The translations under genes were made by a program, and so were the position numbers. A model generated the notes under the pieces. That model was not told the DNA's origin. It did no database searches and saw only the letters and a list, made by a program, of their open reading frames with translations. From Marsupella aquatica (lineage: Eukaryota > Plantae > Marchantiophyta), in NCBI GenBank assembly GCA_973895155.1, contig OZ316898.1, forward strand, positions 15,096,330 to 15,160,329: a DNA stretch of 64,000 nucleotides, given 5' to 3'. This document shows positions 7,313-57,241 of this stretch, piece by piece. Numbering within the stretch: position 1 is the stretch's first letter; each line of letters begins with the position of its first letter.

Positions 7313-7314
7313 AT

Positions 7315-7326
7315 TGGTATCAGAGC
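7315..7326 (+). promoter_or_regulatory. Primer-binding site (tRNA-iMet type)
   Basis: TGGTATCAGAGC lies 2 nt after the 5' LTR. Confidence 0.93.
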
Positions 7327-8851: not shown

Positions 8852-9329
8852 CATCAGTTATTAGTCGTTTCCATCAGTCGACCTGATATCAGTCGGTACA
8901 TCATCTTAGAGAGGCCGCCAAGATGCGGCGCCAAAAGAAAATGCGAAGAAAAAAAAGAAAAAAAAATTCTCAAAATTTGATGAAGAAAAAATAAACTTTT
9001 TTTGAAATTTTTTTCACTATTAGTGTCCGTACCGTGCGGACATCGCTTCTCAGCGGGGCCAGCCGAGATGACCGGGTGTCCGTACGGTACGGACGCCGAA
9101 TTTCCATGAATTTTTTTTGAAAATATTTTTTTTGTTTTGAAATTTTCAAGAAAATAATTTTTCAAATTTTTTTTCCCGTTTTTTTGGTCCGCTCGCCGAT
9201 CTCGGCGAGGTCAGCTGAGATTGAGTCAATCTCAACTGCCTAGCTGAGATGCATGGAAATGCAAAGTCATCATCTGAGCTACTCAGCTGAGATTCCAAAA
9301 AATTTCAGCGGAAAAACTGATAACTGATG
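8852..9329. mobile_element. MITE-like element (possibly hAT-derived) in the copia leader
   Basis: Termini CATCAGTTATTAGTCGTTTCC and GGAAAAACTGATAACTGATG are imperfect inverted repeats. Internal (GCC/GCT)GAGAT-type repeats are present. No clear TSD. Confidence 0.6.
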
Positions 9330-11481
9330 ATCCTCGCTACCCCCCCCAAACTGATTCTCCAAGGTTTTTTGGCATATGTTACTTAAATCGTTTTCTATCT
9401 CTTTTCTCACCTCTTGAGCTTTTCCATGAGTTAGATAGAGTAGGATATAGAGGGACATAGTTTGGTGTACCTTTAGGAATTAGATTTAGAGAGTCTTAGA
9501 CTTATTTTACCTTTTAGGACCCTAAGTTTAGATGAGAAAAGGTTTTTAGGCTTGTAAACCTTTTGGCATCTTAAACCTTTTGAGGGAGCCTTACAAGTGG
9601 ACTCCCAAGATCATGATTCATTGTCTTTTCTTCAACATTGATTTTTGACCAAGTGTGGGTCTTTTTCTCATGCCAAATTGGGCTTAGGAGAAAGAATTTA
9701 ATGGAGAAGACTTGTACCACTCACATCAATTGAATTTCAAACATTTCATGAATCAAACTTAAGTATTCAAGTTTTGATGTTTGAATTAGTTGTAGGAAAT
9801 AGATTTGAATGGATAACTAAGGTGTGCCTTTGAAATCTAGTTGAAATGAGAATTGTACCAACCTTCATGACGTAAAATCGATCACTACTAAGTGTATAAG
9901 GAAATTAGAGGGAAGAGAAAACCTTTCAATCTATCGAGAAGAAGCCGAACCTAAAGAATTTCATTTCAGCATTTGTGACATACTAATCGTTTCAGGATTA
10001 TATAAGGAAAAACAGCAAAGAAATCGCTTGAAGATTTTGAACATCACAAAACCTTGGTAAATCGCTTTGTTTATTCTTTACGGGACCGAATCTTGGTATT
10101 TAAGGATAAAAGTATATACATTTATATTATTCCACTTACCACATCAGTTTTTACAAAGGGGATTTAGCACCCCCTTTAGGACCCTTTTTTGCCATTTTTC
10201 TTCTTTGGTTCTCCTCTGGTGTCGGGACCTGCCGCCCTCCGTTTTAACCGCTTTGACAGGGGAAACGGCCCCCTTTGAGACTTGTCGTACTATGTGGGAA
10301 TATTCCCAAAAAACAAAGAGCTGTTTTTTGGCCGTCCGACAAAGATTCTGCACGCCGAACGGTAACTTTTTTGGTTCTTTTTCGGCGAGGTCGTAGCCAT
10401 TGGAGTTAGCAACGCGGCGAACCAATCAGATTGCGATTCCAATGACGGGTTGTACTTGGTATTTTGGTTATTCCCTGAGGTGGTCAAAACGGGGGAGTTT
10501 CTCAAGGTTTTACCCACCCCGACCGAAATTTGAATAACTTTTGCGTCGAATTTTGATTTTGATTTTTGCTTTCAGTATTGGACTCCTAGCTTCATGAGCT
10601 ACGCGGCGGTGTTGAGTTTTGAGTTTTATGAGAAGTTTTGAAAAAAGACATTTTTTTGTGATTTTCTCATATGAGTGACTCAGAGTATACTGGAAGAATT
10701 GGCGTCAGTGGAGCTTCAGGATCGCGACGGTCAGACGGAGAGACTGAGGAGGAGCTGCTTTCGTTTGAGGAGGAACAAGTATCACCGGTACGATCACCGG
10801 TGCGACATGTAGTGGAGCTGTTCTACTACCAAAGCTGTCGGTAGTTGGGAAGAAGAGAGAGATGGCGAGATTCAGAGGAGTGAAGTTTGAGGTGGAGAAG
10901 TACGATGGTCGTACTAATTACTTGCTCTGGGAAAAGCAAGGGAAGGGTGTTCTTCGGGCCATGGGCTTAGCTCATCTGCTCTCTTCGTGAGAGCAGTATG
11001 ATGGAGAGGAGGAGATGTTTGTGAAGTAGTGGAGACAAGAGTAGGTGATTGTTGTCAATGCGGTGATGCTATACCTCAAGCCACATATCATCAAGAAGCT
11101 GGATGATTATGACAATTGCGCATCACTATTCAAGGCCCTCAAAGAGAACTACTACCGGGAAGATGCATCAGACCGGTTGTACAAGAAGTCTTGCCTCAGG
11201 CTCAAGGAAGGGAGCAAGCTGCAGGATCACCTGGATGAGTTTGACAATCTAGCGGTGGATCTGTCAAACCTGGGTAAGGTAGTTGAAGATGAGGATAAGG
11301 CCTTGCTTCTGCTAAGCTCCTTACCGTCATCTTATCAGGGCTTGAAACAGGTGCTCTTGTATAGAGATCTGAAGTCCATTTTGTATGATGAGGTGGTGAG
11401 TTCTCTACTGTCAAATGATGCACAGAAGAAATTGGGTCAAGCGCAAACAACATCTTCTTCTGGTACTGCGTTGAACGTTAA

Positions 11482-14400
11482 TGTGACAGGGCAATGTGTC
11501 ACTTAACCGAATGCAGGTTCTAGATTAGGACTTATACGGTCATTAGGACCGTCACCGTAGCATAGAATAGCATGAATAGCCGTCTTTGCCATCATGGATA
11601 GATTATGAGTAGGTTAGTTGATCGAATGATTATAAATTAAGGAAGAGGATTATTACGCTCAACCAAGGTACGGTGGCGGCGGCGGAGTAAAAATCCGTTA
11701 GAAGAATCACGCTTGGACCGAGACGCCAACTTCAGCTTATCATCAACGACCAAAACGGCCTTGCCCACTCACGCTCGAGCTCACCCTGGCACCTCCATAA
11801 GAGCGGAGTTGATAAGCATTGCGGGCCATTTGCTCATTTCTACCTTTTGGAATTCGCGGACACTGCCATTCACTCTCGCCTTTTTCTCGAATGAAGCTGA
11901 CCTTTACGAGGAGATTATTGAGGGATAAGAGCGGATTGTGGCGAGATTTTGTCAGGACGAGTAAGGCCTCCACCAGCAAGCGGACCGGCCGGGCAGAAAT
12001 GCGGACTCGACAAACTAGACTACAAAGGTTAGTATGACCCTACAGCCTTAGGATTTTGGACCTTGTTTGGCGAGGTAGGTGCTAAGTTCTCTGAGACTTA
12101 CTGGTACTCTTGCCCCAAGAAAGCCGCTTACGAACGAAGATACGCGAAGTTGGTGGCCAAGGTAGCACAGGTTAACTGTGAGAGGACAACCATCACCAGG
12201 GATTCAAGTTACAATGAGCTACGGGATTACATCACCGAGCTATATATCAGTGAGGAAGGGTTCAGATTGGTGGCAGAGGCAATTCTTGAAGTTCCTGCGA
12301 AGTTCTTTAGGCTAAGGGGCAGCCAGAGACTGACTCCAGCTGAGTTTGACAAGATTCCGAGATACATCGACCAGCAGATTGCAGCCGAGAAGCATGAAGA
12401 AGACATCAGCAGACAACGGGAAGAGGCGCGTAACCTTACATTCCTCGAGGAAAGCTCCAACGCCTTCAACTGGGATATGGCTACCCCGACACCACCCCCA
12501 GCCCCTCAGCCAATGACCACCGGTGTACCACCGAACTGGTCCCAAGTCCGTCCCGTAAACAACACTGAGTATTCCTCGGGTTCCGAGCAGGGTAGTCCGC
12601 AACTTGAGCAATGTTCGCGGAAGCGAGCAAGGATGACACCGGCCCCCAAACTGACAAGGCAAACCAACGCCGCCCCTGCACCTGCCCCGGCAAACCCCCC
12701 AACCAACCAGACCCGACGACCCACGGATAATCCAAAGTCTAACTTACTACAGGTAATCTGCGTCCCCGAGGTAGTCTGGATCGCGATCAAGAAACTTGAC
12801 CACGCGGACTATCTCAAGGAGCTTCATTTGGAGCAGTTCGCTCACTTGCTATGGAGATCGTGCGCAGCCGGGCCAAAGGAGATTTGTGAGTTCATCTCCA
12901 ATTTTGACACGGACGCATCGGCCACCAAGGTTGTAGGACAGACCTTATCACTCACGGAGCATCGGCTAGCATAGATTTTCTACCTGCCAACCGGGCCGGT
13001 GTCGGTTGAACTCCAAATTTGGGATAAGGAGTATACACCTCGGCACTTCAAACCCGAGGGTAAGACAGACAACGGATACAAGCAAGGGTCGTGCACCAAC
13101 TTAATCTGTATGGAGCGGCTTAACTTCATATGGACTACCCTACACATGATTGAGCCACAATCCGAGATCTCCCTCTGCACGATCGTACAGGTAGAACAGT
13201 ACAAACGGCGGAACTGGGCCCAATTCTTTTACCATAGGTTCTCGGGAGAGCTTAAGCGGGCTCAGGGAGGTATGGCTATTGGGGGGAAGACTTACCTGGG
13301 AAGTCATATCGCCATCATCCTCGCTTGGTACAAGGCACGGCGGGAGGCCAGGGGAAAGAATATGGCCATCTCAACCCCGACTAATATCACCCCCGCTCCG
13401 GAGGAGGCTACCTCGAGCGAGCGGACTACCTCACCTCGGGCAAACCCCAAACCGGAGGCCCCGACTAATACTCCGTCACCTCCCCGGGTTGAAATTCCGC
13501 CGCCCCCTTCCGTCGAGCCTCCGCTACCCCCGGTACAACCACCTCCAATCCCTCCACCACCTAAAGAAACCTTCCCCTCCCCATTGCAGACTACAGAGGA
13601 GCTCGCCGCCCCGCCCAAGGAACCGCCGGTACCCGAGAGGATGGAGGACTACCAAGTAGCCCCGGGGACCATGGCCTATGACCTGGTCCAGAAGTTTAGT
13701 CAGACTCTGTCAGGGGAGCTGGCGATGTACATCAGACAACAAGTCTCGGCGTACTTTCAACCAGCCTTCTTCATGTTAGAGCACCAACCACGGATCGTAA
13801 GCCGCTTGGAGGAAGAACTCATGGCAAAGGGGAACGAGATTGGGCGCCTCCAAATGCTGGTAGGACACCTCGAGGAGGAGGCCACTACCCACCATGAGGA
13901 GTTAGCCCGCACCGTCGAACAGCGTGACGGACTAACCCCGGAGTTGAGCAGGGCGCAAACGGATCTCAAGAAGCTGAACGACACCGTGCTTCAGTTGCGC
14001 TCAAAATCCTCGGCTCGGGTTACCAGCCTGACCGACCTCAACAAGCAATTCCTGCAAGCAGCTCAGTAGGTGGCTAGTCTCTCCACCGAACGGGATAAAT
14101 TGCTGGCGCAGGACCAGGCCCAGTGTGACTCCATTATCCAGCTCAACCTGGAGGTAGCACGGCTCCAAACCGAGGCCGATAAGGTGGAAAACGAGGTAGA
14201 GAAGGCGGTACGGGATAACAAGGCCTTGCAGGACCGCGTTACTCTGCTCGTCCTCCAGCGGGCAAGACTTGGGCCCACCTCTGATCAAGGCGGCTCGAGG
14301 TCTCGCTCCGACAGGGGGACAAACCCTGGTCCGACCACAGCACGCACGTAAGGGGTGGTTAGCGAAGGGTGGGAGCAGGCGCCGCATGAGGCAGTTGAGT

Positions 14401-15341
14401 CAGCGGCATCTTTTTGATTAGGCTTAACGACAGAATAGTTGTTATTAGGCGCCGATTAGTGGCATAGTAGAAAGAATTAGGATAGGACCAGTTAGGATCA
14501 GCCGATGTAGGATAGAGTCCATCAACAAACTAGATTTTGGTCAATAGACTTAGCTGCTGCCACCCCAGTCAGCGCCCTTCCCCCCGACGGTCAACCGATC
14601 AGAGGAGTGCGGCCGGTTAGTCAGAAGGTAGTTAGTCAGTAGGCATTACCACGGAAGGTAGTATCTTCCGGTTCCTTTCTACAACTGTAGTATTTAGGCC
14701 TCCCTTTCCGCTGTGGAAAGGGGAGAGAAGGCTTAGTTATCTCAGCGCAAGAAATGACGAGGCACGGGGAGTCTCGGCCTAAGCAGGGTCAGAGTGCACT
14801 AAGGAGTGAGAACCAGAGTCGAGCTTGCTGGGCAAGCGTGGGGCGGGGCTTCGTGGAGATTGGGCATCGACTGACGTTGGGCATGCTGACCCCCTTAGAA
14901 GTCGAGTCAACTATGTAAACTGATTCTTCATTGAGTAAATGTAGTCTTTTCCCCCTAATGTTTTTGCGAGTAACTGGTGTTGTGTGTATGCTTTGTCTGG
15001 GCAAAGGCGCCATTTCAAGGGACGTACTGGGTGCGAACTAATGGTAGGGATTGCCACCCATTGCATGTCACAAGGTTCTGTCGCGTCGATGGCTTGAAAG
15101 CACCAAGTCGGGAGTTAGTCCGAGTCAGTAACTGTGGGAATATTCCAGCGGTGGAAAACAAATATACCTATGACCAGTACGAGTTGCGTAAGTATTATAC
15201 CGGTAAGTATATTGACTTAGCCCGACTTAGGGCTAATCGAGGCCACTACACACCTCCTTGCCCGAACCCTCACCCCTACTGGTGGTCGTGGTCGCCCCAT
15301 GGAACTAAACTGGATTTAAGGCCCGGGTTAGGGGCGTGACA
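11482..15341 (+). mobile_element. 3860-bp TG..CA insertion with 5-bp TSD (putative large Gypsy-type solo LTR carrying an ORF)
   Basis: Starts TGTGACA and ends GGGGCGTGACA. TSD GTTAA at 11477-11481 and 15342-15346. Removal restores the gag reading (ALNVN-RGR). Confidence 0.88.
12063..14351 (+). pseudogene. ~760-codon ORF (two in-frame TAG stops): plant-transposon accessory domain, Pro-rich linker and coiled coil
   Basis: ORFs 12063-12974, 12999-14069 and 14070-14351 are all in one frame. Motif EFISNFD..TKVVG..LT..LA.IFYLP.G..NGY..C.N..NW resembles the 'putative plant transposon protein' (Transposase_32-like) domain. Confidence 0.75.
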
Positions 15342-16282
15342 GTTAACCGTGGCAGACCAGCGCAACGCACGAATGGGCAGAACAAGTTTAGATCTACATC
15401 ACGGGGGAGATCTAAATCCAGAGGAAAATTGCAAGAGAGGAAGCCTCTTGCATGTTGGAGATGTGGCAAGCCTGACCAAATGAAAAGGAATTGTCGAGTA
15501 AAGGACCCTACTGCATCAGCTAACGTGGCATCAAGCGCACATGAGGTAGATTTACTCGATGATGATGACATTTTATGATGCCAAGGTTTTACTCTCAACG
15601 TAGTGTCAAATCTAGGTAGTGATGACTCAATTCTAGATAGTGCATGTACTTTTCACATTTGCTTTAGGAGAGATTTTTTCAGTTCTTACATGGTTTCCAA
15701 TGGTTCAGTGTTGATGGGAAATGGAATCCCATGTCAAGTGGTTGGACTTGGATCTGTTAGATTTCAGATGTTTGATGGTGTTGTGAGAACGTTGAGGAAT
15801 GTGAGACATATTCCCAGCATGATGAAAAATCTCATTTCTTGGAGTTTTAGAAGCAAATGGCCATCGGTGAAGTTTTGCTAATGGTGTCCTTCAGGTTTCA
15901 ACTGGTAAAAAAGTTGTATTGAAGGGAAAGAGACATAAAAATCTATACGTTTTGGAGGGCAATGTAGTTTGTGATGAAGCCAATGTAACCTTATCTCATG
16001 AGGAGACGGCCCGACTATGGCACTTCCGACTGGGTCACATGAGTGAAAAAGGTTTGGCTGTTCTTCAGAAAAAGGGATTACTTTCTAATTTGCAATCTAG
16101 TAAGTTAGAATTCTGTGAGCATTGTGTGGTTGGGAAGCAGCACATGAAACCCTTTGGAGTTGGAACTCACACCAGCAAGGAGGTACTTGAGTATGTACAT
16201 AGTGATGTGTGGGGACCAGCCCCTACTCCCTCACACTCTGGACTGTTATTATGTCACGTTCATAGACGGTTACTCAAGGTAT

Positions 16283-19200
16283 TGTAGCAAGGTGATAAAG
16301 AGATAAATGACTATTTACTCCTTAACAACTCGATTTCGTTCCGGTTAGGGGTGGATAAGATCGAAAAGACCTAATTAACACGATTTGAGAAGTTTACACC
16401 AACATTCTTAGGTTGGAGAGATTTCTAATGATCTTCTTAACATAAGTGTTTAACCACAAACTCAAGTGGGTAATCCTTAGGATTCACAGTGCAATAATAA
16501 AGACTAGAATTAACAAAGATTGAAACTAGAGAGAGAGTAGATAGGAGTTTTCAAAGTGCAAGGGGATTGAATTTCTGACCATCACCACTCCTTCAATAAG
16601 GATTATGGCCTAATTTAAGATTCGGAAATCAATATTATACTTGCTTTTTGATTTCTCGTAGCAACTCTCCTCCATCTATTGAATTTAGAAGATATGAACG
16701 TAAATCAACCCGTGACACTTTTCTGGTCCTGTTGAGGACGGTACTAGGATACTCAAATTGGCTTACTTCTCCTACAATCCTTAAGATTGCTTGGTTGAGT
16801 TTTGTGCAAATGTCAATTTCCTCTTTGGTGAATCTTCCAAATGTATTGGTCACAAATCTCATTGATCTTCCAATATCATTATAGGCACACTCTAGTATTC
16901 ATTGAACATTTCACAACAACTCAAGGGTTGCTAAACTTCTTCCTTTTACTCAACCATGGTAAAAAGAAGGGAAGAAAAGACATAGGTTTCTCCAAAATCA
17001 AAATGGGGAAATCAATGCATCTCTCTCCTTTGGGTTGACTTTGGGTTCTCCTCCTTTTGTACTAAAAGTGGAGATTATGAAAAAACATGCCTTTTCAAAA
17101 CCCAAGTCTAAAGAAGTATGTAAATAAAAGTAAACTATCCTAGTCAAAAATAGAGTAGAGACTACAATGGATATATCAACAAAATGCTGGAGTCTACTTA
17201 CTCATATACTAGTCTACATAGCCATTTCTAGGTCTAAACTAATGTGGCTCTAACTCTCTAAATATAGTTCTATTCAGGTCCTATCTTCTGGGAAGGATCC
17301 TCCTCAGGGTTGGCCATAGCAAGGGGTTCTGGCCGAAGGTAAACTCCCTGCTGGCCAGTGGTAAAAGGGATGGACGGGTCAATATCCATGTTCTCCTGAT
17401 GGGCACTTGGGTCATGAGAATAGGTGTAAGAATGGGAGTGGAAGTGTGTACTGGGAGTGGGAAAACCAGGAGGGTTGAGGGGTGATGAGGGGCCAGTGGA
17501 ATAGACTCCTTTATGAGGACTAGGAGAGAAAGATCTGGTAGTAAAGGGAGGAATCTCAATATCAGCTAATAGCTCCTCAGTAGTCAAGTCACTCATCTCC
17601 CTTAAGGCTTCACAGGTCTTTGAGAGGCCTGTAAGTGCATCATCCACCTTGGTACTCACATCTACCACTAAATGGTTAATCTTGGAGAAAAGGATGGGTG
17701 TGGTGTTCTTGGCCAAATACTCATCATAAATCTGGGCCTTAAGAAGATCCAGAGAAGCTATCTTAGTCAAAGGCTCAATCAGATCCAAAGATTGAGTGAT
17801 ACTGAGTTGGAGAGTATGCTCAAGCTCATTCTTCTTCTTACTCTTTTCCAACTGCTGTTTGAGTTCAGATACCTTCTTCTTGAGAAACTCATTCTCCTTC
17901 TCCAACTTCCTCTTATCTGTGGCATCACTCATGGTGGAGATCTTCTCAAGAATCTGCCCTGGTTTCACTCCTAACTTCTGAGAAATGTCAGTGATGGCCT
18001 TCTCCATCACAGTGGTCTTCCTCTTCACCTTCTGGAACGTGTCTGAGATGATCTGGAAATCAGCTAGGGTGTCTTGGGAGGCATGGCCGGGTGCATCCGG
18101 ACATTCAGCCGGGTCGACGAAGGCCGGGTTGGAAAAGTCCGGGTCGAGGTTCCGGGCAGCAGACCGGGTCTTTCGAGGATTTGTCTCTGCTGGCTCCTCA
18201 TCCTCACTGTCATCAGAGGTGGCCTGGGCGATATCTGGATCTGTCTCTCCATACTTGATGAAGTTGTACTTGGCCAATAGTAATTTCTTCTCCTCTCTGA
18301 ACAAAACTCCTTCAAAGCTATATAGATGTACCAGGTAGCAGGAGAGGGGAGTAGGATTCTTGTTGGATAGGTTCTGTACCAACTTCCTTATCAAATCAAA
18401 GATAAGCTTAGCCCAGTTGACTTTTCTTTCTCCCTTGTAAGCAGCAACAATGGTAGAGCCAACTCCAACAGTAACTCTTCTTGGCTTCTCAAGGTACAGC
18501 AGGGGTAGCAGAAAGCTGAAGACTCGTCTCAGATCAGGATCCAAACACTTAGAAACATTGAACCCGTCCTTACTGTTGATGGCTCCTTTGAAGTAAGGAA
18601 GGATTAGATTGACAACTCTTCCCACTGGACCTTCTCCTTCATCTTCCAATACAAAAGCTCCTGCAATCATCATCTGAGTCCATCGCTCAGGTCGGCCTCT
18701 GGAGGTATCCTTAAACTCAGCCGAACACTCCTTGGATCGGATCTATCTGATCATATCTTCGCTCTGATAACTCCAGGGTAGCTCCATCAGAGACTCACAG
18801 CCCATCCTGAGCAAAGACTCCCTCAATTTGACTTTCTCAGCTTCACTGTCCGGAATAGCTGGCCTCAGAATTTTCATGGCAATAGGGACCTCCTTTCTCT
18901 TCGATCGTCTCACAGGGGCTTTAACCGGAGTAGGTGCAGGTGATGTTGAGGTTGAATGCCCCTTAGAGACGCGAGAAGTGGACATTCCGGCTGGATCCGT
19001 CCCTTGCTCCATAGGACTTATCGAAGTAGAAAATGGATTCCCAATAAATGGCCTACCTCCTCGTCGGCGAGCTCTACAATGCTGCGACTTCAGAATGGTC
19101 AATCGCTTCGGTGTCGACCAATGGTAGAAATATCCGGGTCGACCTGGCTACAGCGTTTCTGATCAACTGACAAGCGCTTCTGGAAACGTTGATCAAGATC

Positions 19201-19881
19201 CCGTCAATCAGAATTCAGGTGCATCGAACGTGGGGCAAAGATAGACTCAAACGGGCCTGCAATGTGGATGTCCGGATCGACCTGGCCTTCCTTCTCATCA
19301 CCGATTTATGCACGATCAGAATCTCAAACTTCCTGCCTTCACTCCCAGTGGCAGAGTAGGCATTCCCCTCACAACGAATCAGTCAGTACCCTCATATCCA
19401 GGCTCTCATCAAGAAATTCAAGATTGGTCCTATAATCCGGACCCAAGATCCTCTACCAAAAGGGTAGAGCCTCCTCACTCTACTGCTTTAACAGCCTAAT
19501 GCGCTCGGGAACTCAAAACCTACTAAGTTTGGCTTTGAGAGGTGTGAGAGGCCGGATCGACTCTCCTTCCTTATATCCGGATTCTGCTGTGGTCGTGCCT
19601 GTGTTTGACTTATGGTTTTAAAAACTTTGGCAATGGACAGCTGTTGTTGAGTAGAGTCTCGGTATAAGCTTTATATCTCATTCCAGGCTTATAACAAAAA
19701 GTTCCGGGTCGATCCTCCTTCTCTAATATCAATCCGGGTTGACCTCAGATGGGCTTGAAAGTCTCATAACACTTCAAAGTAGTCTTCAGGTCCCTCTTTA
19801 GCCTCATTTGAGATCTTAAACTTAAAAATTCAAAAATTTATGGCTAGTTAACCCTTCCTTCATAAACATCCTTATCTCACA
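16283..19881 (-). mobile_element. 3599-bp TG..CA insertion with 5-bp TSD (putative large solo LTR carrying an ORF)
   Basis: TSD GGTAT at 16278-16282 and 19882-19886. On the minus strand it reads TGTGAGATAAGG...CCTTGCTACA. It interrupts the copia integrase (DGYSR-YVWIYF). Confidence 0.88.
17270..19102 (-). pseudogene. ~610-codon ORF (one in-frame stop at 18743-18745): transposon accessory domain and coiled coil
   Basis: ORFs 18743-19102 and 17270-18673 are in frame. Motifs LPW..RGRPERWT..KDGF..C.DP..FLLPLLY.EKP.RVT..VNWA..YLVHLY are followed by heptad-rich sequence. Confidence 0.75.
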
Positions 19882-22592
19882 GGTATGTGTGGATCTACTT
19901 TCTCCACAACAAGTCTAATGTTTTTGCCACTTTTAAGGAGTGAAAAGCCCAAGTTGAGAATTAGATTGGTAACAAGGTGAGATATCTTTGATCGGATAAC
20001 GGCGATGAATACGGTTCTGAAGAATTTGGAACGTATTGTAAGGAGCAGAGGATTACACGTCACCTCACAACAAGTTATACTCAACAACAAAATGGTGTTT
20101 CTAAGAGGCTCAACCAAACACTATTGAAACGCTCAAAGAGTATGTTGAGTCAATCATGCTTACCACATGAATTTTGGACTAAAGCTGTCAACACTACAGC
20201 TTATTTTGTAAGTTTCTCTCCATCAAGTTCTATTGAATTCAAGACGCCATTTGAAACGAGGTACAAGCGTCCAACAAATTACTCACATCTGAGGATTTTT
20301 GGATGTGATGCTTATGTACTTACACCTTCTCAGCTTTGATCCAAGTTGGAGTCCAAGTCAAAGAAGTGCATTTTACTTGGCTATCAGAAAGGTGTGAAAG
20401 GTTATAGGTTATGGGCTCCAGTAACCTGTAAACTAATTGTCAGTAGAGATGTGTCCTTTAATGAATCCAGATCATCAAAGAAGGGGGAGAGTTCTCAGGA
20501 CTCCCATACTGACAAGGGGAAATCTCCCATCCCGGACTCGGTTGAGGGGGAGATTAGTCATGATGATGTTCATGACAAGAGAGATGGAGAAGCTCTGGGC
20601 ATGGAGCTAGTTCTTGTGATGGAACAAGAGGAGCAGATTATTGCTGGGGTACCTCAAATTCACCTAGCAGCAGCATCAGATCAGCTTGAATCATCTGCTA
20701 GAAGAACTTTTAGTCGTTTTACTAGAGCTCCTACCAGGTATGGTCAATTTAGGCAGACTCATCTAAGCTAGATGATATTGACATTGCACTTGATGATGAT
20801 ATGGCTTTGATCTTGGAGGAAGGAGAGCCTTCTTTGTACAGTGAGCCTTGTGCTTCAGAGTAGGAGCATGAGTGGAATGCAACAATGCAAAGGGAGTTAC
20901 AATCTTTGAGTGACAACAAGACATGGGAGCTGGTGGAGCTTCCAAGAGGTCAGCAAGTGGTGGACAGCAAGTGGATTTACAAGTTGAAGGACAGTCCTTC
21001 AAAGGGTGAAGACAAGATTTTCAAGGCAAGGCTTGTTGCCAAGGGATTCACTCAGGAGAAAGGAGTGGATTACAATGAGGTCTTTTCACCGGTGGCTAAG
21101 TATTTCACAATTCGGATCTTGTGTTAGTTTGTTGTGTTTTTTGGTCTGGTGATGGATTAGATGGATGTTATTACCTACTTTTCTCTATGGCAACTTGAAA
21201 GAGATGATCTTCATGAGACAGCCAGTAGGCTTTATGAAGAAGGGCCAAGAGAACTTAGTTTGCAGATTGCTCAATTCCTTGTATGGATTGAAGCAAGCTC
21301 CCAGACAGTGGAACAAGCGGTTTGATGATTTCATGCTTGCTCAAGGTTTTATAATGATGGTGTATGATCCTTGTGTGTATACAAAATCAGTCAAGAATGA
21401 TGCATTTGGTTTCATCATTCTGGTTATCTATGTGGATGACATGCTGATTGTGGCTAAAGATCAATCTGAGGTTGACAGACTCAAGGCGAAATTGAGTTCT
21501 TTATTCAAGATGAAGGACTTTGGTAAGGCCAAGAGGATCTTAGGGATGGAGATTTTTAGGAACTCTGATACTGGACAGTTGTGCTTGAATCAAGGCAAGT
21601 ATGCGAGGAAGGTACTTGCATGATTCAACATGGAGGATTATAAGCCAGTGAGTATCCTTTGGCTTCATATTTCAAGTTATCATCGGCTTTCTCTCATACG
21701 GATGTTATGGAGAAAGGTCTGATGGCTAAGATTCCTTATGAGAAGGCAGTAGGCAGTCTGATGTATTTGATGACTTGTACTAGGCCTGACTTGGCCCTAG
21801 CAATGGGCAAGGTTAAACCCTAAATTAGCAGATTCATGTCAAATCCAGGGAAGCTCTGAAATGGATTCTCAGGTATCTGAAGGGAACACAGGACTATGGA
21901 TTACTATTTGATGCCAAATCAGATAGAACGTTAGTTGGCTATGTAGATTTTGACTATGGAGGCTGTCTGGACACAAGGAGATCAACAACTGGGTATGTAT
22001 TTACTCTTGGAGGAGGATGTATCAGTTGGAAATCTACCTTGTAGAAGTGTATATCTCAGTCTACTACAAAAGCAGAGTATGTTGCAGCAGCAAAAGCAGC
22101 AAGGAAGCAATTTGGTCGGACAAGTTGATCACGGAGATGGGTTTAGAGCATGGCAAAATGTCTCTAAACTGTGATAGTTAGAGTGCTCTTCACTTGGCTG
22201 CTAACCAGGTGATGGATAGCAGGGTGAAGCACATTGATATCAGGTACCATTTTATCAGGCAAGCAGTGTCTGATAAAACTTTTGAGCTAGTCAAGATTGA
22301 TGGAAAGCTCAATCCCGCTGATGCCTTTACCAAAGTGATTCCTTTGGAAAGTTTCTCAAGACACCGTGCTACTTTGCAGGATTTGCAAACTTTGTAGCAC
22401 AAGTAGAGTTATTTAGCAATGTGTGACTATTTGTATATGGATTACTCATTCCAGTTTGGCTACGGCTTAGTTCTAGTTAACCCTTAGTTAACCCTTGTGG
22501 TTTTTAGGGGGAGACCTGTTTAGGTGATTGTCTAGAACCTCCCGCTGAGGATTCCATATGGTAGCAATTAGTCCACTCCCCAAGACAAGAGT

Positions 22593-22604
22593 CAAAGGGG
22601 AGTT
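22593..22604 (+). promoter_or_regulatory. Polypurine tract
   Basis: CAAAGGGGAGTT lies immediately before the 3' LTR. Confidence 0.8.
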
Positions 22605-22949
22605 TGTTAGGTATTGCTCTTAGTCTTGTGACTCATGAGCTAACCACAGTTAGGCTAACTCGGGTTAGGACTTAGCTAAGGTTAGCGGAAGTGCCGTTGT
22701 GTATATTGCCAGGGCTGGTGCCAGACCCTAGGGGAACTTAGGCTCATTGTTACGGAGCTAGTTGAGAGATAGGGAGAGCTTGTGCTGTGGATACTTGGTA
22801 TGGCCGATTAGCCTAGAGTGCAGTAAAGCTCTTGTGTGTTCCCGTGAATGTAGCCTCATGTGGAGGTGAACCACGTATCTATCTGTGTTGACTCTTGTGC
22901 ATTGGATGGTTCATGGGCTTGCCGTTGCAATTGTCGTCTAGGAGCAACA
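22605..22949 (+). repeat. 3' LTR of copia element
   Basis: TGTTAGG...GCAACA followed by TSD ATTCC. Confidence 0.96.
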
Positions 22950-23647
22950 ATTCCAACACCCTTGCCTAAGTGCCCTTGGTGTCCGAACAACTACATGGAA
23001 CTCATTGAGCAAGCAACTAGGTACCTCGGGCATCACCACCCAGACAGGAAACAGGAAAATAGGAACTGTTACCAGTAAATATATGAAGTTTTTGGCCCAT
23101 TTTTTATGGAAAGGTAAGACTTGATCGGGTTCCTTGCAACAACAAAATTCATATGCTGTCTCTGTAAATGAATTACTTGTCCACCATATATGCGTAAACC
23201 ATAGAGTGGGTCCCACCATACATAGGCTACTGAGGCGAGGCACACTCAAAAAATACCAATCTTAAAAATATCATCGGAATCGGTAAGGTACTATGTAATA
23301 GCGCTAGGCGCTAACAAAAAAACCAAGGGGTTTGAGATGAGACCAAATGGATTGAACGGTGTTCATAAATAAATAATTAAGTACACTTCAATGAAGTGTG
23401 ACCTGGAAGGTGTAGATTTATATCCCACGAGAAGAACTCAAATATAGGAAAGTTCACAAATGGAGATTTCCTTTGCAAAGATAAGTACTAGAAAGCATTC
23501 GGACCATAATCAAACAAGATTCACTCAGAAAGGGACAAACTGAAGCTAGCGCCCGGCGCTAGCCATATGTTATAACAAAATGTGTACTGAAAATGACTAT
23601 CTGATTTGGTATCATTGAAAAGATGTGAAAAGTTCCAATGCGACAAA

Positions 23648-26600
23648 TCAGTTTGGAGCCGTTGAATCCACCACATCTAGTTTTAGGACGTTGGTATACA
23701 CCCAATAGAGATGCTTGCACGGCATGAAGGGCCTGCCATGAGAATGGCGACGATAGAAGTCCTCACAAGAACAACATGGGAAAATGCAAATCTGTACCCA
23801 ATAAGTGTTTGCCGTGCAAAGTCTCTCTTGGGTTTGGATCTGAAATTGTTTGCCCCAAGAGTTCCCAACAGAAACATCAAATTGTTGAATGAGGGTCATC
23901 GACTCCTTGTTTGCAGATTCAATTCTTTTGTTGTGCCCTTGCAAAAGATTTGAACGTGGGATTGTATTTTTACCATTCCTGCTCCAAAGGCGGATATTGG
24001 CTCAAGGAGATTGATTTTCTCCAGGAAAAGCTTCACATTGATTTGCAAGTCAAAAGGAGATGGAGCAGCCTGATGTCCAGCCTCTGGATTGATAGCAATT
24101 CCTTGCTGAGTTTGGAATTGGACCTCAGCCTTGGAAAGATTAGTTCCTTTCAAAACGGGCAGGCTATGAGGAAATGGGGGAAGATTCACCACATTACGAT
24201 GGGGCCGACTCTTATAGCATGCACTATTGGGACAAAACCAAATCATCTCAGGGTGTGGTTCTCCCCTGAACAAGCGATATCCTTTGACAACAATGCCAAC
24301 TACACCATCCATTGACGGGTAACCAACCTTTTTAAGACGATTGCGACAGTCATCTCGATCCGATTTTCCACCAAGAGATCCATTACACTGAGGCCCTACA
24401 CCATGTCTCGTCACTCTTCGTAGGTGCCACGCCCCTGGTTGCACATCTGTCTCCAACACAGTTGAGTCATGGACAACCTTTTGGAGGTTGGGAGGTGCAC
24501 TTTGCGGGGCTACAGACGACCTTGTTGACCTCCTCCGGGGTGGAGTACTCCAATGACTGCCTTCTTCAATTTCACTTCTGACAGGTCCACAACCCCAATG
24601 TCATGGTGAACAGGACCCAATGCAACGGGGGAGAATTCAGTCTTGTTTAAGTTTTTCCTTTTCATGCCTTGAGTATTTGGTGATGATACAAGAATAGTGT
24701 CATGCCGATGGGAGTCTTGTGTCGAGATGTTCCCAGAGGCTTGACCTTTCCTCTTCATAGACTTTGTGGTAACATCCCCATTGAGAGGGCCACTCCTTTC
24801 CAGGTTGAATTCAACAGCACCGGAAAGAAGCATATTGGAAGCATCTTGGAAAAGTTTTGAAGAACCTGCTTGGTCTGCCGAACGGAATGCCAATTCCCAA
24901 ATTGTAGGTCCGGTTCCTCGGTTAAGACCTCTCTTATACGCCGTATACGCACCAACTTGTGAAAGAGCCCTATTTTGATCCATCTCACATGCTTCAAATA
25001 GACTAGCCTTTTTCTTAGTTTGCCAAGCCTTCATTATGGAATGTGCCGCCTCTGAAGTAGTACAGTCAGGAATCATAGCGCTTTCATCTACGCTTTTGTT
25101 CTGCATAAAACATTTGGAGCACAGTTTAGGAAATATGACTAAGTCACTGCATTCAATAAAGAAAAGTTTGAACCAAATCATTTTGTAAGGTTTCCGGGTT
25201 TAATCAATGCCAGCGCCTGGCGCTAACACCATTCACACTAGAATATGGACAAATACGAGTAACAAGTGGTTAATAAAAACTAGCGTCGGGCGCTAATATC
25301 AAAACTCGGGCAAATATTGGAGTGGAACGAGGACACGAAAGTCACTGGAAATAATGATAGCGCCAAGCGCTAGTATGACTTTGTTTGATTCCTTCTTTTA
25401 AAATGTTGGTTTCGAGTGTTTACTTGTTTATGGATGTTGAAACTCACCAAATGAATGAAATTTCCCCATTGACACCATCGGACCACCCACCACGCAAGCC
25501 AACCTTGGAGCATCCGAAGCTTTCCTAGAACACAATTCCCTGATCTCCACCACACGTCAATTTCCCTGGAAATTTTGTAGGCTCCAATAAATGTTGACGC
25601 GTTCCTTAAAGAGTCCCACATCTTCCGGTGCTCTTCTCGTTTTTCTTCCAATACTCCTTCAATTGAATCACAATGAAACGATTGATAGAAGTGAAACGCA
25701 TCCGATCGCTCCTTTTCCGGGTTAGGATGTCCACCAAAAAACACATTCCAAACAACATTCCATCCAGCTTGAGCATTGTCAGCCATGAATCCATGGATTA
25801 CTAGCTTGTCTAACCCATTTTCATGGAAAACCTCAATCATCAATTTCCAGGCTTTTTCTAATGACTCAGAATCTTCAGCTTTCAACTCACATGTGAAGAT
25901 TGTGCAAAGAGCACGGTAATTGTGATCATAAACGTGAGTGCTAAAAGTTATCCAATCCTTGGTCTTTCTCCTCATACATCAAAACTAACCCACGCACCTT
26001 CTAGTCGACCTCCAGGTTGCATTTGGCGCAACAAATCAACTCCAGATCCGTGCCCTTTTACCGTCATTTTGAAAATATGCGGCCTCTCCTCCTTATAGCC
26101 TTGACCTGGGAGCATGTAACGTTGTAGAAAGGGAAAGTTTATGCATTTTTGCATTTCCACAAGAAACTCTAACTCACCTTTACCATTTTGGTCTTGCCGA
26201 ACACTCCGAAAAAGAGATGCAAACTTTTGAGGGGTCGAAACAACCATTAATAACTCCCAAATTTCTCTTTCCTCCGATTCTCCGATGTCATTGTTGGACA
26301 CACAAAGAGCCTTCCTTAAAGATCCAGTTATGGCATTCTTCATACCCGATGGTGTGGCATACGGTGTAGCTTCATGTTGCTTCTTTATGAACTCATGAGC
26401 AATCTTTTCCGCACCTCGAGAAAAAACTTTATGACTGGGATGCGCATGAGTTCCGACATGCACAACAAGACGCGACATATGTTTACATGTATCCGCGTTG
26501 AGAAGTAATTGCGGGTACATATAAAAAAGCATTGTTGAACAAGCTTTAGTACAAAAGGGCAATTGTTGGCAGTAGTGACAAACTACCCCACCCTCCTCAA

Positions 26601-27426
26601 TAATCTTTCCCATGGTATGTGGCCCCGCAAGTTTGGGTGTCCCATCCCAAGCTTTTGAATTTCTTCTTTTCTTCCGCAATAGATAATCATATTTCTGATT
26701 TTGACATTCGAGTGCACCGGTACACGTCACTTTACCAAATTCCCAAAACTTTTTAGGTTGGACATTCGCAGAGGTTGGAAATATCCGTGTCCAGAAGTAG
26801 CAGTCTTTAGGCCGGTCCATGTCACGGAGCCTCAAACCTTTTGATAGCAGACCTTCTGCGGGAGGCAATTCAAACACAACATTTCCATTGTATTTACTTG
26901 GTAGACAATTCACCTGCTCATGCCTGAAATCACTTATTCGGATGAACCGCGACAGTTCACTATGGCCAGTTGATTTGAGAATGGCATCCATCGCGCTTCG
27001 ACAGTACACAACACCCCCCGAAACGTTTGGCTCGGAAGGAGAGTGACCTTCTATCTTGATAGAAGGCCCTGGATTGGCCGATGTCTGCAAATCTACGACG
27101 ACCTCCTCCTCATCACTCTTGGAAAGGTCAATGAATGGAACTAGATGTATTTCATTCAGAACCGAATGTTGTCGGATATTGATAATGTATCTCTTTCCAG
27201 CGTTGAGGTGCCAAAATCTGACTCCATCATCGATATCAAACAGTGCGTCATCTGTCTCCTCTCCATATGCATGGTCAGGTTTGATGGAATGGATGTCGTT
27301 GATGGCAACGTCAAATCTTCCACAAAGATAGTTCTCACTAACCTGTTTGTACGTGTCGGATGAACCTACAGGGATGCTTACAATCTCCCCAGTATCAGGA
27401 CAAAGAAGCACGACTAAATTAGACAT
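23648..27426 (-). pseudogene. MULE transposase: GCM/WRKY-like Zn DNA-binding domain, DDE core, C-terminal SWIM finger; intron 25447-25101
   Basis: CTGALECQN..CHYC..HVGTHAHP; putative DDE residues SFDV, GFMADN, TSEAAH; SWIM CSCEDF..PCKHLYWV. Frameshifts near 25975 and 23950, stop at 24510. Confidence 0.82.
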
Positions 27427-28301
27427 TGTGGGAGAATGATATTAATTTGATAAACAAAGGAACTGAGAAAATAAGAGAACATAATTACTCAACTTAAGTT
27501 AAGTAAACTCATTCCGAACCTCAGAAGATTATCGTTTGTAAACGATAAAATGGGTACTAGTCGTTAGATGCAGACACATAAATGTAGTTTGTCGTTTTGC
27601 CAATGACACTACTTACCGGTAACGTGTAAAAAACGCGATCAGATAATTATTAGCGCCCGGCGCTACCATAAAGAAGTACTCGGGTTTCAACTTAGAAACC
27701 AGACTGAACGTGCTAGCGCCAGGCGCTATCATTAGCGGACTGTCAAGTCAGAGCGAAATATTTTATTGATTTTGATGGAATTGTTGAAAAATCAATAAAC
27801 ATTTCATTTTGTTTTGGAATCGTTACTTCTTGGGAAAATACAAGGGATATACATAATCTCCTCCGTGTCATCGTCATGTATGAGAGTATTTTTAATGGTT
27901 TTTGATACTAGCGTCGAGCGCTAGTATCGATGGAGATGACTTTGGTTTGCCCAACGGTTACCTCTAATGGTAACATATATGAACGAATTCCTTACTTTGT
28001 ATTGTTTTCCATTGGATTGTTTAACGATACACTCCCATTCATCGCTGCATCCACAAATGACTTGAAAATAGATGTTAATTATACTCATTTCAAACAGTCC
28101 CTGCCACCTGTCTTTGTTTGGATTGGTCAGCGAGATTCTTTCAATCCGACTCGTTCTTTGTCACATGATGTCAACTGCACTATGATGGAAAAGTTTTAAA
28201 GGTTTTATGTAGTTCTTTGTGTACGGTAATTTGTTCGGAGCGTGAGGGTAGAGACTGGCTCTGTGTCGTATAGAGACCTTCACGTATTGACATGCTCCAC
28301 A

Positions 28302-31300
28302 ATGCAACCTTCAAGCGCCCCAAGCTCTCCAAGAGGGTATACCACAGTTCTAGAGGGAGATCATGGTCATTGCAAGTCTACACAATCTTTGTTCTCTGGG
28401 GCATTTTACTCGCATCGAGTTACAAGGTCGAGCGGAGCAATCACTTCCTTCAATGCAACACTACCACTCCAGAAGTCCAGAAGGGTCCGAATGGACATGG
28501 ATAGCATGACCGATTACGCGCTGGGAGAGGGCAACGTGGTTGGATTAGGGATGCATGAAGTCATCTCGTGACACATAATGTCATTTGGAAAAGATTTCCG
28601 GGGAAACGAGAAGGAACCGCCCAGGATTCCGCTTTGTTGGTTGATCCACATGGAGGTAGTGTGGACGCTTCAGAAGGAGAGTACGTCAATTGAGAAATTG
28701 AAAGACTCGTTTCGAAGTAGTGGCTACAATCCAAGGATTGGAATGCGGTCTTTTGTGCAACCGGCCGATTCCGATCAGTGTGGAGCAAATATGCACTGAG
28801 GAGATCAGAGAGTCTTGGGATGCTATTTGGGTTGCTGAGAACAAGAAATTTGAGTTAGAATGCGCAGCAGATCCAGCTTTTACGATCTTGAAAGACAAAA
28901 TGTTCTCAGTCTTTGACAGGAATCACCGACTGTACTCGTGGACTATGGTCACAAAGGAAAATCCAGACAATGTCAAGTATCATCCCAGAGTTCTCTGCAC
29001 CATTTTCAAGGGTGATAAAGCTTTGCAAATTCAGATTGAGGTGGCTATGCACACAGTCAACCAGTAAGTAATTCGGCCCAAACTTGTAATTAAACATTTC
29101 CGCAATCCGTTGTTGTTAAATAAATACTAAAGAGAGTGTTTGTTTTTATGCTAGCGCCTGGCGCTACTAATTTCAAACATGGCCTATTGCAGGTTAGGGC
29201 AGGCTGTTGTTGAACCGTCATGGATCTAGAGTACTATAAGTCAATAATTGACAGCGCCAATTATGCAAAGTTTGAGTATATAAAACATAAGACTTGAAAC
29301 ATTCTTGGTACACACGGAAAATGCCTCTAGAAGCTCTTGTTTATATTTTGTGCAAAAACAAAATCAAAGCTTACACTAACCAGTTCAAGATGGACATGGC
29401 ATTGGCAGCAAGTCAAGGCAATCCTTGGTCAGTTGATGAGGTCGCAAAGCGGCAGTCACTCATGTTGAAAGAGGCCACCAAAGATTGGTCTACAAAAACA
29501 TCCAAAATCACTCCTCTTCTTAGTCCTGAGTTTGAAGATTTTCTAGGTACTTGTGCAGAGATGTACGTATTGACGGAGAAGAACAAGCGAGAGAAAAAAA
29601 CCCAATTCGGTTGTTTGTACTATGGACCGTGCTAGACTATTCACAGCAGTTTCTGTTCTCGATCCAAAATTGAGATGCACTTTGCTTGTTGCTCACTGTA
29701 CTCTAGAGTTGAGAAAACAATTCTTCTACCCTGCCAATGTGAATGATGATCCAGTGAAGCAATGGTGTCACACATGGCAGACCTGGAATACCGTCGAGGG
29801 AATCGCAATTGGGATGTTGCAGTCTACAATTTCCGCAGCCATTGAAACACTCCCAGTTGATAGGCTTATGCTGCCCATTCAGGGTGTGACTCAGTAGAGG
29901 GAGGGTCTGATTGAAATTATTTCAAGTGAGTTCAGAAGGTATGGGGATCTTGTGAAGGCAAAGTTCTTCAACACCATGTGGCCATCAAAATACCCTGATA
30001 AAGAGGTATATACAGAGAAAAATCAGAAGAGGGCCAAGAGGTATTTGTATCGTTTTTACATATGGATGGAAGTACATTCCCCGGATGCGCTTTGGGTGTA
30101 TCCAGCCGCATTTCACAAGTGGATTGTTGCAAAGGAGGGAGATCATGTTGCTGACTTGTATTCGATGTATCCTACCGAGGGTAAACTTCCACCACGGGAA
30201 ATGTCTGAGTGGGAAAGAATTCACTGCCCGTGGTATCTTGACACAGACAAGTGAGATTCACCATTTGACAAAGTGGAGAAGGATTGGTTTCTTAAACTAG
30301 CCAAGTTGTAGATTCTACCCAACATAGTTTCTGAGATGAAGCAAGGGCTCCTGAGCGACGTCGACAAATCATCTACTGAGTTACAAAAAATCTGTGAGAC
30401 AGTAGTTGTCCATGTAGACAGGAGCCGCAAGCCGAGAGGGAAAGTGAAAGTAGACACAACACTACCAAGTGCATCAATGCGATCCGGGAAGAAACGTACG
30501 TTTTCATTCAAACCCAGTTTAGTTCTTTGCTAGCGCCTGGCGCTACTATTCCTGTACTTCAACCTTAATCCGTTTTTTTCTTTCTGACACTAATCCCACA
30601 TTCTCTGCATTGTGTGAATAGGTTAAAAGCAGTCGGATGCAGACGCCACTGATGATACAAAGGTTACCCTGGAAGCTTCAGAAGCAAACACTGGCGCTTT
30701 GCCAGATCCACTTACACCAGTTAATTCTGGAAAATCAGTTGTACCAGTCAATGCAACAAGTACAAAGAAGAAAAGCAAGAGGATTCGCGATGCTGGGCAA
30801 TCAGAAAGGGATTCTCTGGCGGCCACCGGGCTCCAACGTGATGTTGGGAATTTTAAATCCAAGGCATCTCGTCATTGTTTCGTTGAGACCAGTGTCAGTG
30901 AATTAGTGAACAGTGAGTTTAACAAGGGAGAAGCCAGAATGGGTTAATGATGCCAAAAAGTGGGGGAAGGACTTAACCAAATCGGGATGCCGACTGAAAG
31001 GGGTGGTGAGGGGTGGGAAAGAAAGGCCTTTTGGTGTTGACGCTGGTTTTATTTATTTGCCACCTGGGCTAAAACCAACTTTGCTTGATAGGAAGGTCCC
31101 TAAATGGAACGTTCTCGACTGTACGCTAGCCCGATGTTTTTTCCGGGCAATGGATCCCTTTTTGTCGGATGACAGAATTATTGCGATACTCCATATGGGA
31201 GAGTATGATCAGATTTCACAGGTCATCTCAACATGTCAAGAGTCTATAAGAAATTCCAATATTTGTGTACACATAATGTTGTCATGGGGTTCCCCATGTA

Positions 31301-32522
31301 CAAGGCCAAGTTTGATTTGCAGGTAAATCTATTCATCACAATTTCAAAGTTTTGCTAGCGCCAGGCGCTGCTCATTTTATCTAGTGCTCGATTAGAAATT
31401 TTAATCTTTTCCTAGGTACACTACTAATCATACTCTTAATTCTTTGCTAGCGCTCGACGCTATTACAATTCTTAGGTCCTTACTTGTTCATGTTCCCTTT
31501 TCAGGTATTCACTTTACGTTTGGATATATTTTGTCGGGTATCATCCAAGGTGAAAGTCCCAAAGGATCCTAAGTTCAAACCTCTTTCAAGAACAGAGGAT
31601 CCCTCTATCACAAATCTGATCGGACTTCCGTTTGCGAAGGTGGATACAACTCCAGAGCTTGAATTTGCCGGGAATGCCAGACTACATCCAGGGTTTATGC
31701 AGTCTGTTCTGGAACTAATCATGCGTCCCAAAGATATTGTTCTGGATTGGGCTGTAGGTTCTGGGAGTACATTTGTGGCAGGTGATAATTGTGGTCGATT
31801 TGTAATTGGGCTCAAGAATAGGAAGAAGTTCGTTGAAACCGCCTCAAAAATATTTCTTGACCTTCTAACTCCCAAAGTATCTGAGTCCAAAGCCCCTCCG
31901 AAGCCTATGCTTGCAAAACGAAAGAGAGACAAACTTAAATCAGTATTAAATTTTGACTCCGAAGATGAGAATGAAACAGAAGAGGGGGAAGAAGAAGAGG
32001 AGGATCCCAACATTCCCAGAGTGTCTTTAACCAGAGAAGATCCGGAATCTAATGGAGGGAGTGACAACGGAGACTATTCTGAGTAAGAAACTATCGAGTA
32101 AGCTCATAAGCTAACCCGGTTTTTATTACGGTCGATTCCCTTCTTCTCTCTTTGATGTCACCATTTTTATTTCCTTTTTTGCAAATATTGTGGTCGTTGA
32201 CATAAAATCCAATATTCTCCTCCTCAAGTCAGACTGGAATCTTCGTCGGCGTTTCCAACTCAGACGGAAAGTAGCTAGGTGATATATTGAAACTTCTGAG
32301 AAACCATTTGTCTTACCTTCCTATGCTGAAAATGTTGCTAGAAGAGTTGACAGTGTGCGGACCTTGCACTGGGAGAATAAAGGCTTGAGATTAAGGAGGG
32401 GGTCTGATAGAAAATTTATGCGGAACCGATTTGTGGATGATATGGCCAAGAGCAAATTTTTAGACATCGAGGCAGAATCTACCGACAGGTCCGAATCAAA
32501 TGAATCGGAGTGCTCAGATTAA
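28302..32522 (+). pseudogene. Multi-exon gene: ParB/Sulfiredoxin-like N-terminal domain, helical middle, beta-class N4/N6 DNA-methyltransferase-like domain, acidic tail
   Basis: RIPLC(W)L..VFD(R)NHRL matches ParB DGxHR. VDAGFIYLPPG sits at the motif IV position and PKDIVLDWAVGSGSTFVAG...GRFVIGL matches motif I onward. Introns at about 29064-29192, 30496-30621 and 31323-31504. Stops and frameshifts are present. The 3' end is 32086 or, with a further exon, 32522. Confidence 0.72.
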
Positions 32523-32869
32523 CTTGGATCTCTATTGTGTATTTTGGGTTTATTTTATAGTGGAACTATGCTAGCGCCGGGCGCTACCCAAATGTATGCA
32601 AGGAATGTTGTACAAACAAATATATTATATGTCAGTTGCAACCATGGTGTGTCCGCTCGAAGTACACTTTTTGTTATAGTAGCGCTCGACGCTACTATAA
32701 TTGTATGACGGTCATGACGCTGATACATTGGTACTCCCGTACTTTCTGGATGACGTCAGTCAATCTTTACCGTTAATATTTTGTCTGGTCAGTCGCGATG
32801 GTCATGTGAGGTGAAAATGCCCGTTTGATGTTGAGACGGCCATTTCCATTTTAGACCGTAACGGGAGTT

Positions 32870-56718: not shown

Positions 56719-56811
56719 TACTTCATTTGACTAACTGTACTTCATGATATGGAACAAACAACTGCTTTGGTTGTGCCCTCAAGAATAGTTAACATAGAGC
56801 TAACTGGCATT

Positions 56812-57016: not shown

Positions 57017-57241
57017 ATGCACTTTTGGATCCTATGTCGACGGTGCGATATTAGGGTGACTGTTGCGGGGTTTAGGGCGTCCTTAAACCGTCCCCCTGAG
57101 GTAAACCTGTTTTAAGCGCGACGTAGCATGCAGCGTAGCCCATTTGCAACGTCGTGCAAGCGGGAGAGGGGAGCAGAGAGCAGACCATTGAGCAGCTTCA
57201 GAGGATAGCAGAGAGTAGTCGATTGAGCACACTGCGGGACA

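Follow-up and report, generated by a model that had tools for sequence, protein, structure and literature searches.

Palindrome arrays in the non-coding DNA of a liverwort transposon: candidate recognition sites for an element-encoded protein

The element and its palindromes

We analysed a 64-kb stretch of DNA from the liverwort Marsupella aquatica (contig OZ316898.1, positions 15,096,330 to 15,160,329), hereafter called the window, in which a putative transposon carries two divergent genes, both broken, and 14 copies of a short palindrome. The putative transposase gene (23648..27426, minus strand) was recognised from its open reading frame (ORF) pieces and their homologues. A divergent spacer (27427..28241) separates it from a second gene (28242..32086, plus strand), which combines a ParB/Srx-like N-terminus with a C-terminus resembling N6_N4 methylases, the middle region between them being conserved. 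Exact copies of TAGCG-N5-CGCTA number 12 in the window, against 0.00 expected from dinucleotide shuffles, and the shorter AGCG-N5-CGCT occurs 14 times against 0.17 expected. All 14 palindromes lie within 23299-32694, and the other 54.6 kb of the window holds none. When up to two mismatches were allowed, the search returned the two remaining element copies, at 25211 and 31356, each altered at the outermost base only (T>C and A>G, respectively), together with four scattered matches, a number at chance level. An earlier note on this DNA had described 14 copies confined to the non-coding DNA of this interval, and both the pattern counts and the sequence confirm their number and layout. It had also warned that copies found by eye are biased towards conserved arms; relaxing the arm CpGs to YR and the core to YYNRR gave the identical set of copies and uncovered no hidden decayed one.

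The copies are distributed over every non-coding compartment of the element. Two lie downstream of the transposase gene (23299..23313, core CTAGG; 23547..23561, core CCCGG) and three in its intron (25211..25225, with outer base C and core CCTGG; 25281..25295, core TCGGG; 25358..25372, core CCAAG). The divergent spacer holds another three, at 27651..27665 (core CCCGG), 27714..27728 (core CCAGG) and 27904..27928 (core TCGAG). In the second gene, the three GT..AG introns contain one, one and two copies: 29152..29166 (core CCTGG) in intron 1, 30531..30545 (core CCTGG) in intron 2, which reads GTACGT..AG, and 31356..31370 (outer base G, core CCAGG) and 31448..31462 (core CTCGA, the reverse complement of TCGAG) in intron 3. 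The last two are found beyond the end of this gene, at 32572..32586 (core CCGGG) and, at the right end, 32674..32700 (core CTCGA). The extended arms already seen at 27904 and 32674 are indeed present, with lengths of 10 and 11 nt.

Folded onto each other, the 28 half-sites read R R C G C T A n Y A from the centre outwards, with positions 3-6 invariant in 28/28 and extra information at positions 9-10, a profile that resembles that of a binding motif. The statement that AGCG/CGCT is whole in every half-site was upheld, and a transition-tolerant search adds no copy. The full site covers about 21 bp (T-R-n-TAGCG-CCnGG-CGCTA-n-Y-A), and the similarity between copies stops within about 21 bp without flanking duplications; the intron copies have a T-rich 5' flank in common (repeat family D1). 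A restriction-site reading (RGCGCY, CCNGG) was rejected, the conserved part being TAGCG/CGCTA and not GCGC.

The core departs from CCSGG 16 times, each time by C>T or G>A, and 8 of its 56 C/G positions are altered when the centre is excluded. The centre base itself is S in seven copies and W in seven, which does not reveal the ancestral state. A double variant, TCGAG or its reverse complement, recurs at 27909, 31448 and 32680, with TCGGG (25281) as an intermediate. Because three identical independent double hits are improbable, this variation is unlikely to consist of independent hits throughout, and some of it is either inherited from one site to another or an alternative form that the site tolerates. 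The idea of a decaying core therefore stands as far as the type of change is concerned, all changes being transitions, but it does not account for the recurrence of the double variant at three sites.

Both genes are dead in the window while all 14 palindromes are whole. The transposase gene is read in five ORF pieces (27426-25972, 25975-25370, 25181-24510, 24459-23896 and 23944-23648), with an intron at about 25447-25182 and a frameshift at about 25972, inside a D..D..E-like region whose pattern was seen by eye. Its C-terminus (23648-23944) shows a SWIM-like CxC..CxH, and Pfam SWIM was matched in two relatives below the cut-off (E 0.023 and 0.28). The second gene has introns at about 29068-29293, 30498-30620 and 31324-31505, in-frame stops at about 28569, 29895, 30252 and 30309, and frameshifts near 28720-28799 and 29600-29635. 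In addition, a G-to-R change affects its DGNHR motif, which reads DRNHRL in the window (at about 28930) and DGNHR(L/V) in relatives. For both genes, protein searches were run by single exon or ORF piece, unspliced.

No terminal inverted repeat (TIR) or target-site duplication (TSD) was found in the window by flank alignment or by inverted-repeat, 8-10-mer direct and 14-mer inverted searches, which leaves the element ends undefined, nor was one found in three of the related loci described below (L002-L004). The palindromes are therefore the only sequence common to both ends, and from this position the terminal copies probably serve end recognition.

Other transposons share the window. On the left, a Copia-type long terminal repeat (LTR) retrotransposon adjoins the element (6968-22952; LTRs at 6968-7315 and 22605-22952, 94% identical), with TG..CA ends, a 5-bp TSD (ATTCC) and the primer-binding site TGGTATCAGAGC. 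It provides no empty site: the palindrome-bearing element starts within about 350 bp of the right LTR and is not bracketed by it. Farther to the right, at 51841-62716, lies another transposon, unrelated to the element, which has Pfam MULE and SWIM domains together with a further gene whose product bears an RNase H1 N-terminal (Cauli_VI) domain. It carries 13 copies of a palindrome of its own, GAAGAC-N12-GTCTTC, partly in tandem units of 51 and 200 bp, and has no ParB/methylase-like gene. Neither tblastx nor hhalign revealed similarity between this transposon and the palindrome-bearing element, and it was ruled out as a relative and kept as an analogue only.

Palindromes of related elements

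Relatives were collected by a HMMER search, which gave 213 matches, and by a word search with a 484-aa ORF, which gave four short Logan contigs. The closest database proteins, 70% identical, are found on Logan contigs of 1-2 kb, and a search with the ParB-like region returned 20 hypothetical proteins, all from Riccia sorocarpa. From these matches, nine loci with long flanks were taken for comparison: L002 (GCA_965154635.1), L003-L006 and L008-L010 (GCA_046195345.1, from the liverwort Riccia sorocarpa; PMC11923412) and L007 (an ENA assembly). Homologues of the second gene are present in all nine, accompanied in seven by a divergent, adjoining transposase gene, and the amino-acid identity to the window gene pieces ranges from 27 to 57%. 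In L007 the transposase is kept and the second gene is reduced to an N-terminal remnant; L010 gave second-gene matches only. Beside the truncated gene of L007 (2049-2453) lies an ORF with a SWIM-type zinc finger that belongs to another transposon, a context that suggests nested insertions.

In eight of these nine relatives, the non-coding DNA holds an array of the relative's own palindrome, and L010 has one such site. Seven distinct palindromes were found across the eight, at the termini, between the genes and, where introns were mapped, in these as well. The site is ATTGCTAGCG-AGCT-CGCTAGCAAT in L002, CCGGCGG-N3-CCGCCGG in L004, AGCTAACG-N5-CGTTAGCT in L005, CCAGCGA-N3-TCGCTGG in L006 and CCTTCGGATCCGAAGG in L007. 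Three further loci have closely similar sites, which combine into TTCC(A/G)GCG-N5-CGC(T/C)GGAA: TTCCAGCG-N5-CGCTGGAA at the ends of L003 and L008, and TTCCGGCG-N5-CGCCGGAA in the spacer of L003, L008 and L009. Nearly all of the family palindromes have a CG-N5-CG frame (CG-N4-CG in L002 and L007), while the outer bases and the core vary. The outer half-site of the window element, TGCTAGCG, is that of L002 and nearly that of a tandem array in L005.

The positions of the sites are conserved along with the frame. In L002, sites occur in all seven compartments that are occupied in the window, among them the homologous introns, one in the transposase gene and three in the second gene. The coding DNA of L003, L008 and L009 is about 72% identical at the nucleotide level and no alignment spans their spacers, in which the palindromes make up 8-10% of the length and about half of the common 11-mers. 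The palindromes have kept their places while co-evolving with the element that bears them. In these three loci the end class (TCCAGCGG-N3-CCGCTGGA, in L003 and L008) and the divergent-spacer class (TTCCGGCGA-N3-TCGCCGGAA, in all three) occupy fixed places, at 1361-1825, 8273-9222 and 13452-14736 in L003, at 3068-3868, 8359-9466 and 15583-16440 in L008, and at 7797-8800 in L009.

Regular tandem arrays of motif-bearing units are found in L002, L005 and L006. That of L005 (19765-21729) has a period of about 347 bp and the unit AGCTAGCG-GTTTT-CGCTAGCT, whose arms are the GCTAGCG half-site of the window; it adjoins the element whose main site is AGCTAACG-N5-CGTTAGCT. L002 has the highest share of decayed palindrome arms, and its transposase frame is interrupted by an insertion or an exceptionally long intron of about 4.2 kb (11482-15746).

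What may read the sites

We then considered what such an array could be for. We regard it as fairly probable that the palindromes act in cis as recognition sites, bound by dimers of a sequence-specific protein encoded by the element family. This reading draws on the palindromic structure, with half-sites one helical turn apart and a motif-like profile, and from the fact that family-specific versions occur in the same compartments and persist in spacers that can no longer be aligned. The binding site of a dimeric protein, as the earlier note had put it, is still the best reading of the palindrome geometry and of the relatives, although the support that they give is indirect. In such a mechanism, the invariant CGCT/AGCG of each half-site would be the part that is read, whereas the core and the outer positions would tolerate purine-purine or pyrimidine-pyrimidine changes. 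With sites at both ends, in the promoter spacer and in the introns, the protein would recognise members of its own family. As VANC21 in VANDAL21, TnpA in Spm and AtMu1c suggest by analogy, it would likely use the sites to designate the ends for transposition and to maintain the promoter and the body of the element in an active state against silencing. We infer binding, the identity of the binder and any downstream effect from these comparisons. As to the reader, the N-terminal Cys/His region of the transposase comes first in our estimate, though tentatively; the ParB/Srx-like, methylase-like protein is a possible second candidate, and a role for both, or for another protein, appears less probable.

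Several points weigh against the recognition of these sites by a protein of the element. Non-coding DNA represents about 27% of the element and the chance that 14 of 14 copies fall there is about 1e-8, but any long motif would be expected to be missing from exons, and this alone has little weight. In a single copy, moreover, decay after insertion and the history of the lineage are inseparable. The site also differs from the VANC21 target, a directional 9-mer, in being palindromic, 15-21 bp long and built on a conserved CpG frame, and Tandem Repeats Finder detected no motif-bearing tandem repeat or site amplification in the window copy, unlike at VANC targets. The candidate transposase is itself difficult to place. 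Neither the window ORFs nor 26 homologues gave a Pfam MULE or Transposase_mut match, the hhalign comparison with the bona fide MULE transposase of the window gave a probability of 0.6%, and a PDB profile search with its N-terminal region returned no match. The assignment to the Mutator-like elements (MULEs), and the transposase class as such, are consequently tentative. The gene labels given at first were weaker than stated in both cases, since the transposase lacks a Pfam MULE match and the ParB-like label corresponds to the DGNHR motif and a modest fold match.

The alternative that survives best assigns the sites to the second gene in a parS-like manner: the ParB/Srx-like, methylase-like protein would load at the palindromes, spread or bridge, and shield the element from silencing. 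We consider this unlikely. Homologues of the gene accompany every related locus, the sites are 15-21 bp palindromes as parS sites are, and the DGNHR(L/V) motif is kept in relatives at the ParB/Srx signature position. The end and spacer classes of L003 and L008, with the spacer class in L009, may also point to two readers. An AlphaFold2 model of the ParB-like region, built from 24 sequences (pLDDT, the per-residue confidence, 69; pTM, the global one, 0.69), found at the top of both structure rankings only ParB, Noc, KorB, PadC, sulfiredoxin and related kinases; a first model from an 8-row alignment had been discarded (pLDDT 43). However, the fold scores are modest (Foldseek E 0.4-5; VIA-align Z 4.5-5.5, hence below 6, over about 95 residues with a root-mean-square deviation of about 3.5 Å), Pfam and NCBIfam found no ParB domain in the second gene, the PHROG ParB matches were weak (E 0.18-0.31), and a PDB profile search with the ParB-like region gave no match. 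By inspection of the relatives and the window, a GERR-type arginine box for binding of cytidine triphosphate (CTP) is not evident at the DGNHR position. Pfam found no helix-turn-helix or known DNA-binding domain in the conserved middle region, whose ESM Atlas neighbours (0.81-0.82) are weak and non-informative. Finally, the transposon at 51.8-62.7 kb has an array of its own without this gene, so palindrome arrays do not depend on it.

The C-terminal part of the second protein does not favour self-marking either. Its last exon resembles methylase motif I (PF01555, E 9e-6, just under the cut-off; PHROG, E 2e-5; NCBIfam, E 1.5e-4), but motif IV reads LPPG in the window and LPNG, MPSG or IPTG in the relatives, without (D/S/N)PP(Y/F/W). 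An active amino-methyltransferase, marking the element with N4-methylcytosine or N6-methyladenine, is therefore unlikely, motif IV being absent from the window and from every relative. One may also propose that a ParB/Srx domain of bacterial or phage type, fused to the catalytically dead methylase domain, was adopted as a reader that loads on the palindromes like a parS-binding protein, coats the element and excludes cytosine methylation, in which case the arm CpGs would survive; we judge this specific combination more doubtful still than the parS-like scheme.

The arm CpGs bear on a further alternative, namely that they are unmethylated or otherwise marked in the germ line and deaminate slowly, so that the sequence need not be read at all. 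All 28 are intact in the window copy, against 16 transitions at core C/G positions, and from the core C/G rate or the masked background rate four to eight losses would be expected. This contrast (P about 1e-2 to 1e-4, depending on the baseline), drawn within a single copy of the element, is suggestive. Orphan TAGCG/CGCTA half-sites are not in excess in the element, numbering 3 where the remainder of the window predicts about 5. Protection would also agree with the lowering of local CG methylation by VANC binding (PMC5735166) and with a divergent spacer that is not depleted in CpG as a whole (observed/expected ratio 1.08 with the motifs masked; in the window, 0.84 for non-coding against 0.60 for coding DNA). 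Nevertheless, the ratio by distance from the motifs shows no gradient of CpG retention and no footprint of local hypomethylation, being 0.67 at 8-30 bp and thus no higher than at 31-60 bp (0.96), 61-120 bp (0.87) or beyond (0.83). Among L002 sites picked by their outermost anchors only, 7 of 46 arm CpGs were lost, all by transitions, and TG/CA arms occur in L003 and L004 sites too. Self-marking by the methylase-like domain is unlikely, as described above, and a CG frame maintained across families whose proteins are only about 30% identical requires selection. Protection from deamination of 5-methylcytosine, one of the two options of the earlier note, was accordingly not borne out, and we find mutational protection improbable. 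The other option, that the arm CpGs are selected, gained support: because the CG-N5-CG frame is common to families with transposases about 30% identical, the arm CpG appears to be a conserved part of the recognised sequence. Intact arms beside broken genes fit selection on the transposing lineage rather than chemical protection, since copies mobilised in trans must keep their sites.

Least probable of all is an array without any protein reader, a small self-propagating or slippage-prone repeat or an intronic RNA hairpin that piles up where the sequence is free: the identical core variants at three sites do suggest copying between sites, and the T-rich flank of the intron copies and the tandem units of the relatives go in the same direction, but no copy occurs outside the element in 54.6 kb, copies occupy the spacer and the DNA past both genes in addition to introns, their similarity ends at about 21 bp without flanking duplications, and the relatives swap the sequence while keeping the compartments and the CG frame.

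Comparison with known systems

Recognition by an element protein of repeated sites in its own element is known in the Spm and Ac transposons, where the TnpA 12-mers and the AAACGG repeats lie at both ends and in the promoter and are read by a protein able to activate transcription. In bacteria, ParB, Noc and KorB load at palindromic sites (parS, NBS and OB, respectively) and spread or bridge. To our knowledge, the experimental demonstrations that transposons recognise themselves by specific sequences are confined to a few elements of flowering plants (VANC, TnpA, AtMu1). A full-text literature search turned up no paper that connects ParB-like genes with Mutator-like elements and liverworts and, within the library searched, none describing the palindrome; a survey of Mutator elements mentions neither ParB-like genes nor liverworts (PMC6446971).

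A close parallel comes from the VANDAL21 Mutator-like elements of Arabidopsis, where VANC21 binds the family-specific motif YAGTATTAY in introns, between genes and in terminal non-coding DNA, as established by chromatin immunoprecipitation sequencing (PMC5735166). In both cases a short, family-specific motif occupies the introns and the intergenic and terminal DNA of a TIR-poor DNA transposon with two or three genes, and related families carry different motifs, with tandem amplification in L002, L005 and L006 here. The differences are that the host is a liverwort, that the accessory gene is ParB/Srx-like and methylase-like, and that the present array is known from sequence alone. No similarity to VANC was detected, Pfam giving only the N6_N4 methylase fragment and no VANC sequence having been compared.

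The AtMu1c transposase alone binds the ends of its element and activates cognate copies (bioRxiv 10.64898/2026.08.24.746577). The palindromes resemble the TIR motifs of AtMu1c and the Spm and Ac arrays as repeated, CpG-containing sites at both ends and at the promoter, but they are also found in every intron, are palindromic and are not framed by a TIR. With ParB, Noc and KorB, the element shares a weakly matching N-terminal domain of the ParB/Srx fold and multiple palindromes of 15-21 bp, close to parS in length. It differs from them in that neither CTP-box arginines nor a helix-turn-helix was detected, in the fusion to a methylase-like domain, in having a spliced eukaryotic gene inside a transposon, and in sites spread over 9 kb and not gathered at one locus.

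If these sites are read as we propose, liverworts would use a strategy of the VANC, TnpA and AtMu1 type with different parts, including an unrelated accessory gene of bacterial type, and their transposons would maintain co-evolving palindrome arrays in conserved compartments and with a conserved CpG frame. The system offers a defined 21-bp site and two candidate readers. Moreover, the presence of a CpG in every half-site would make it a natural system in which to ask whether a transposon protein reads or resists the CG methylation of its host. By analogy, the palindrome array is best interpreted as a variant of the known motif arrays through which transposons recognise themselves.

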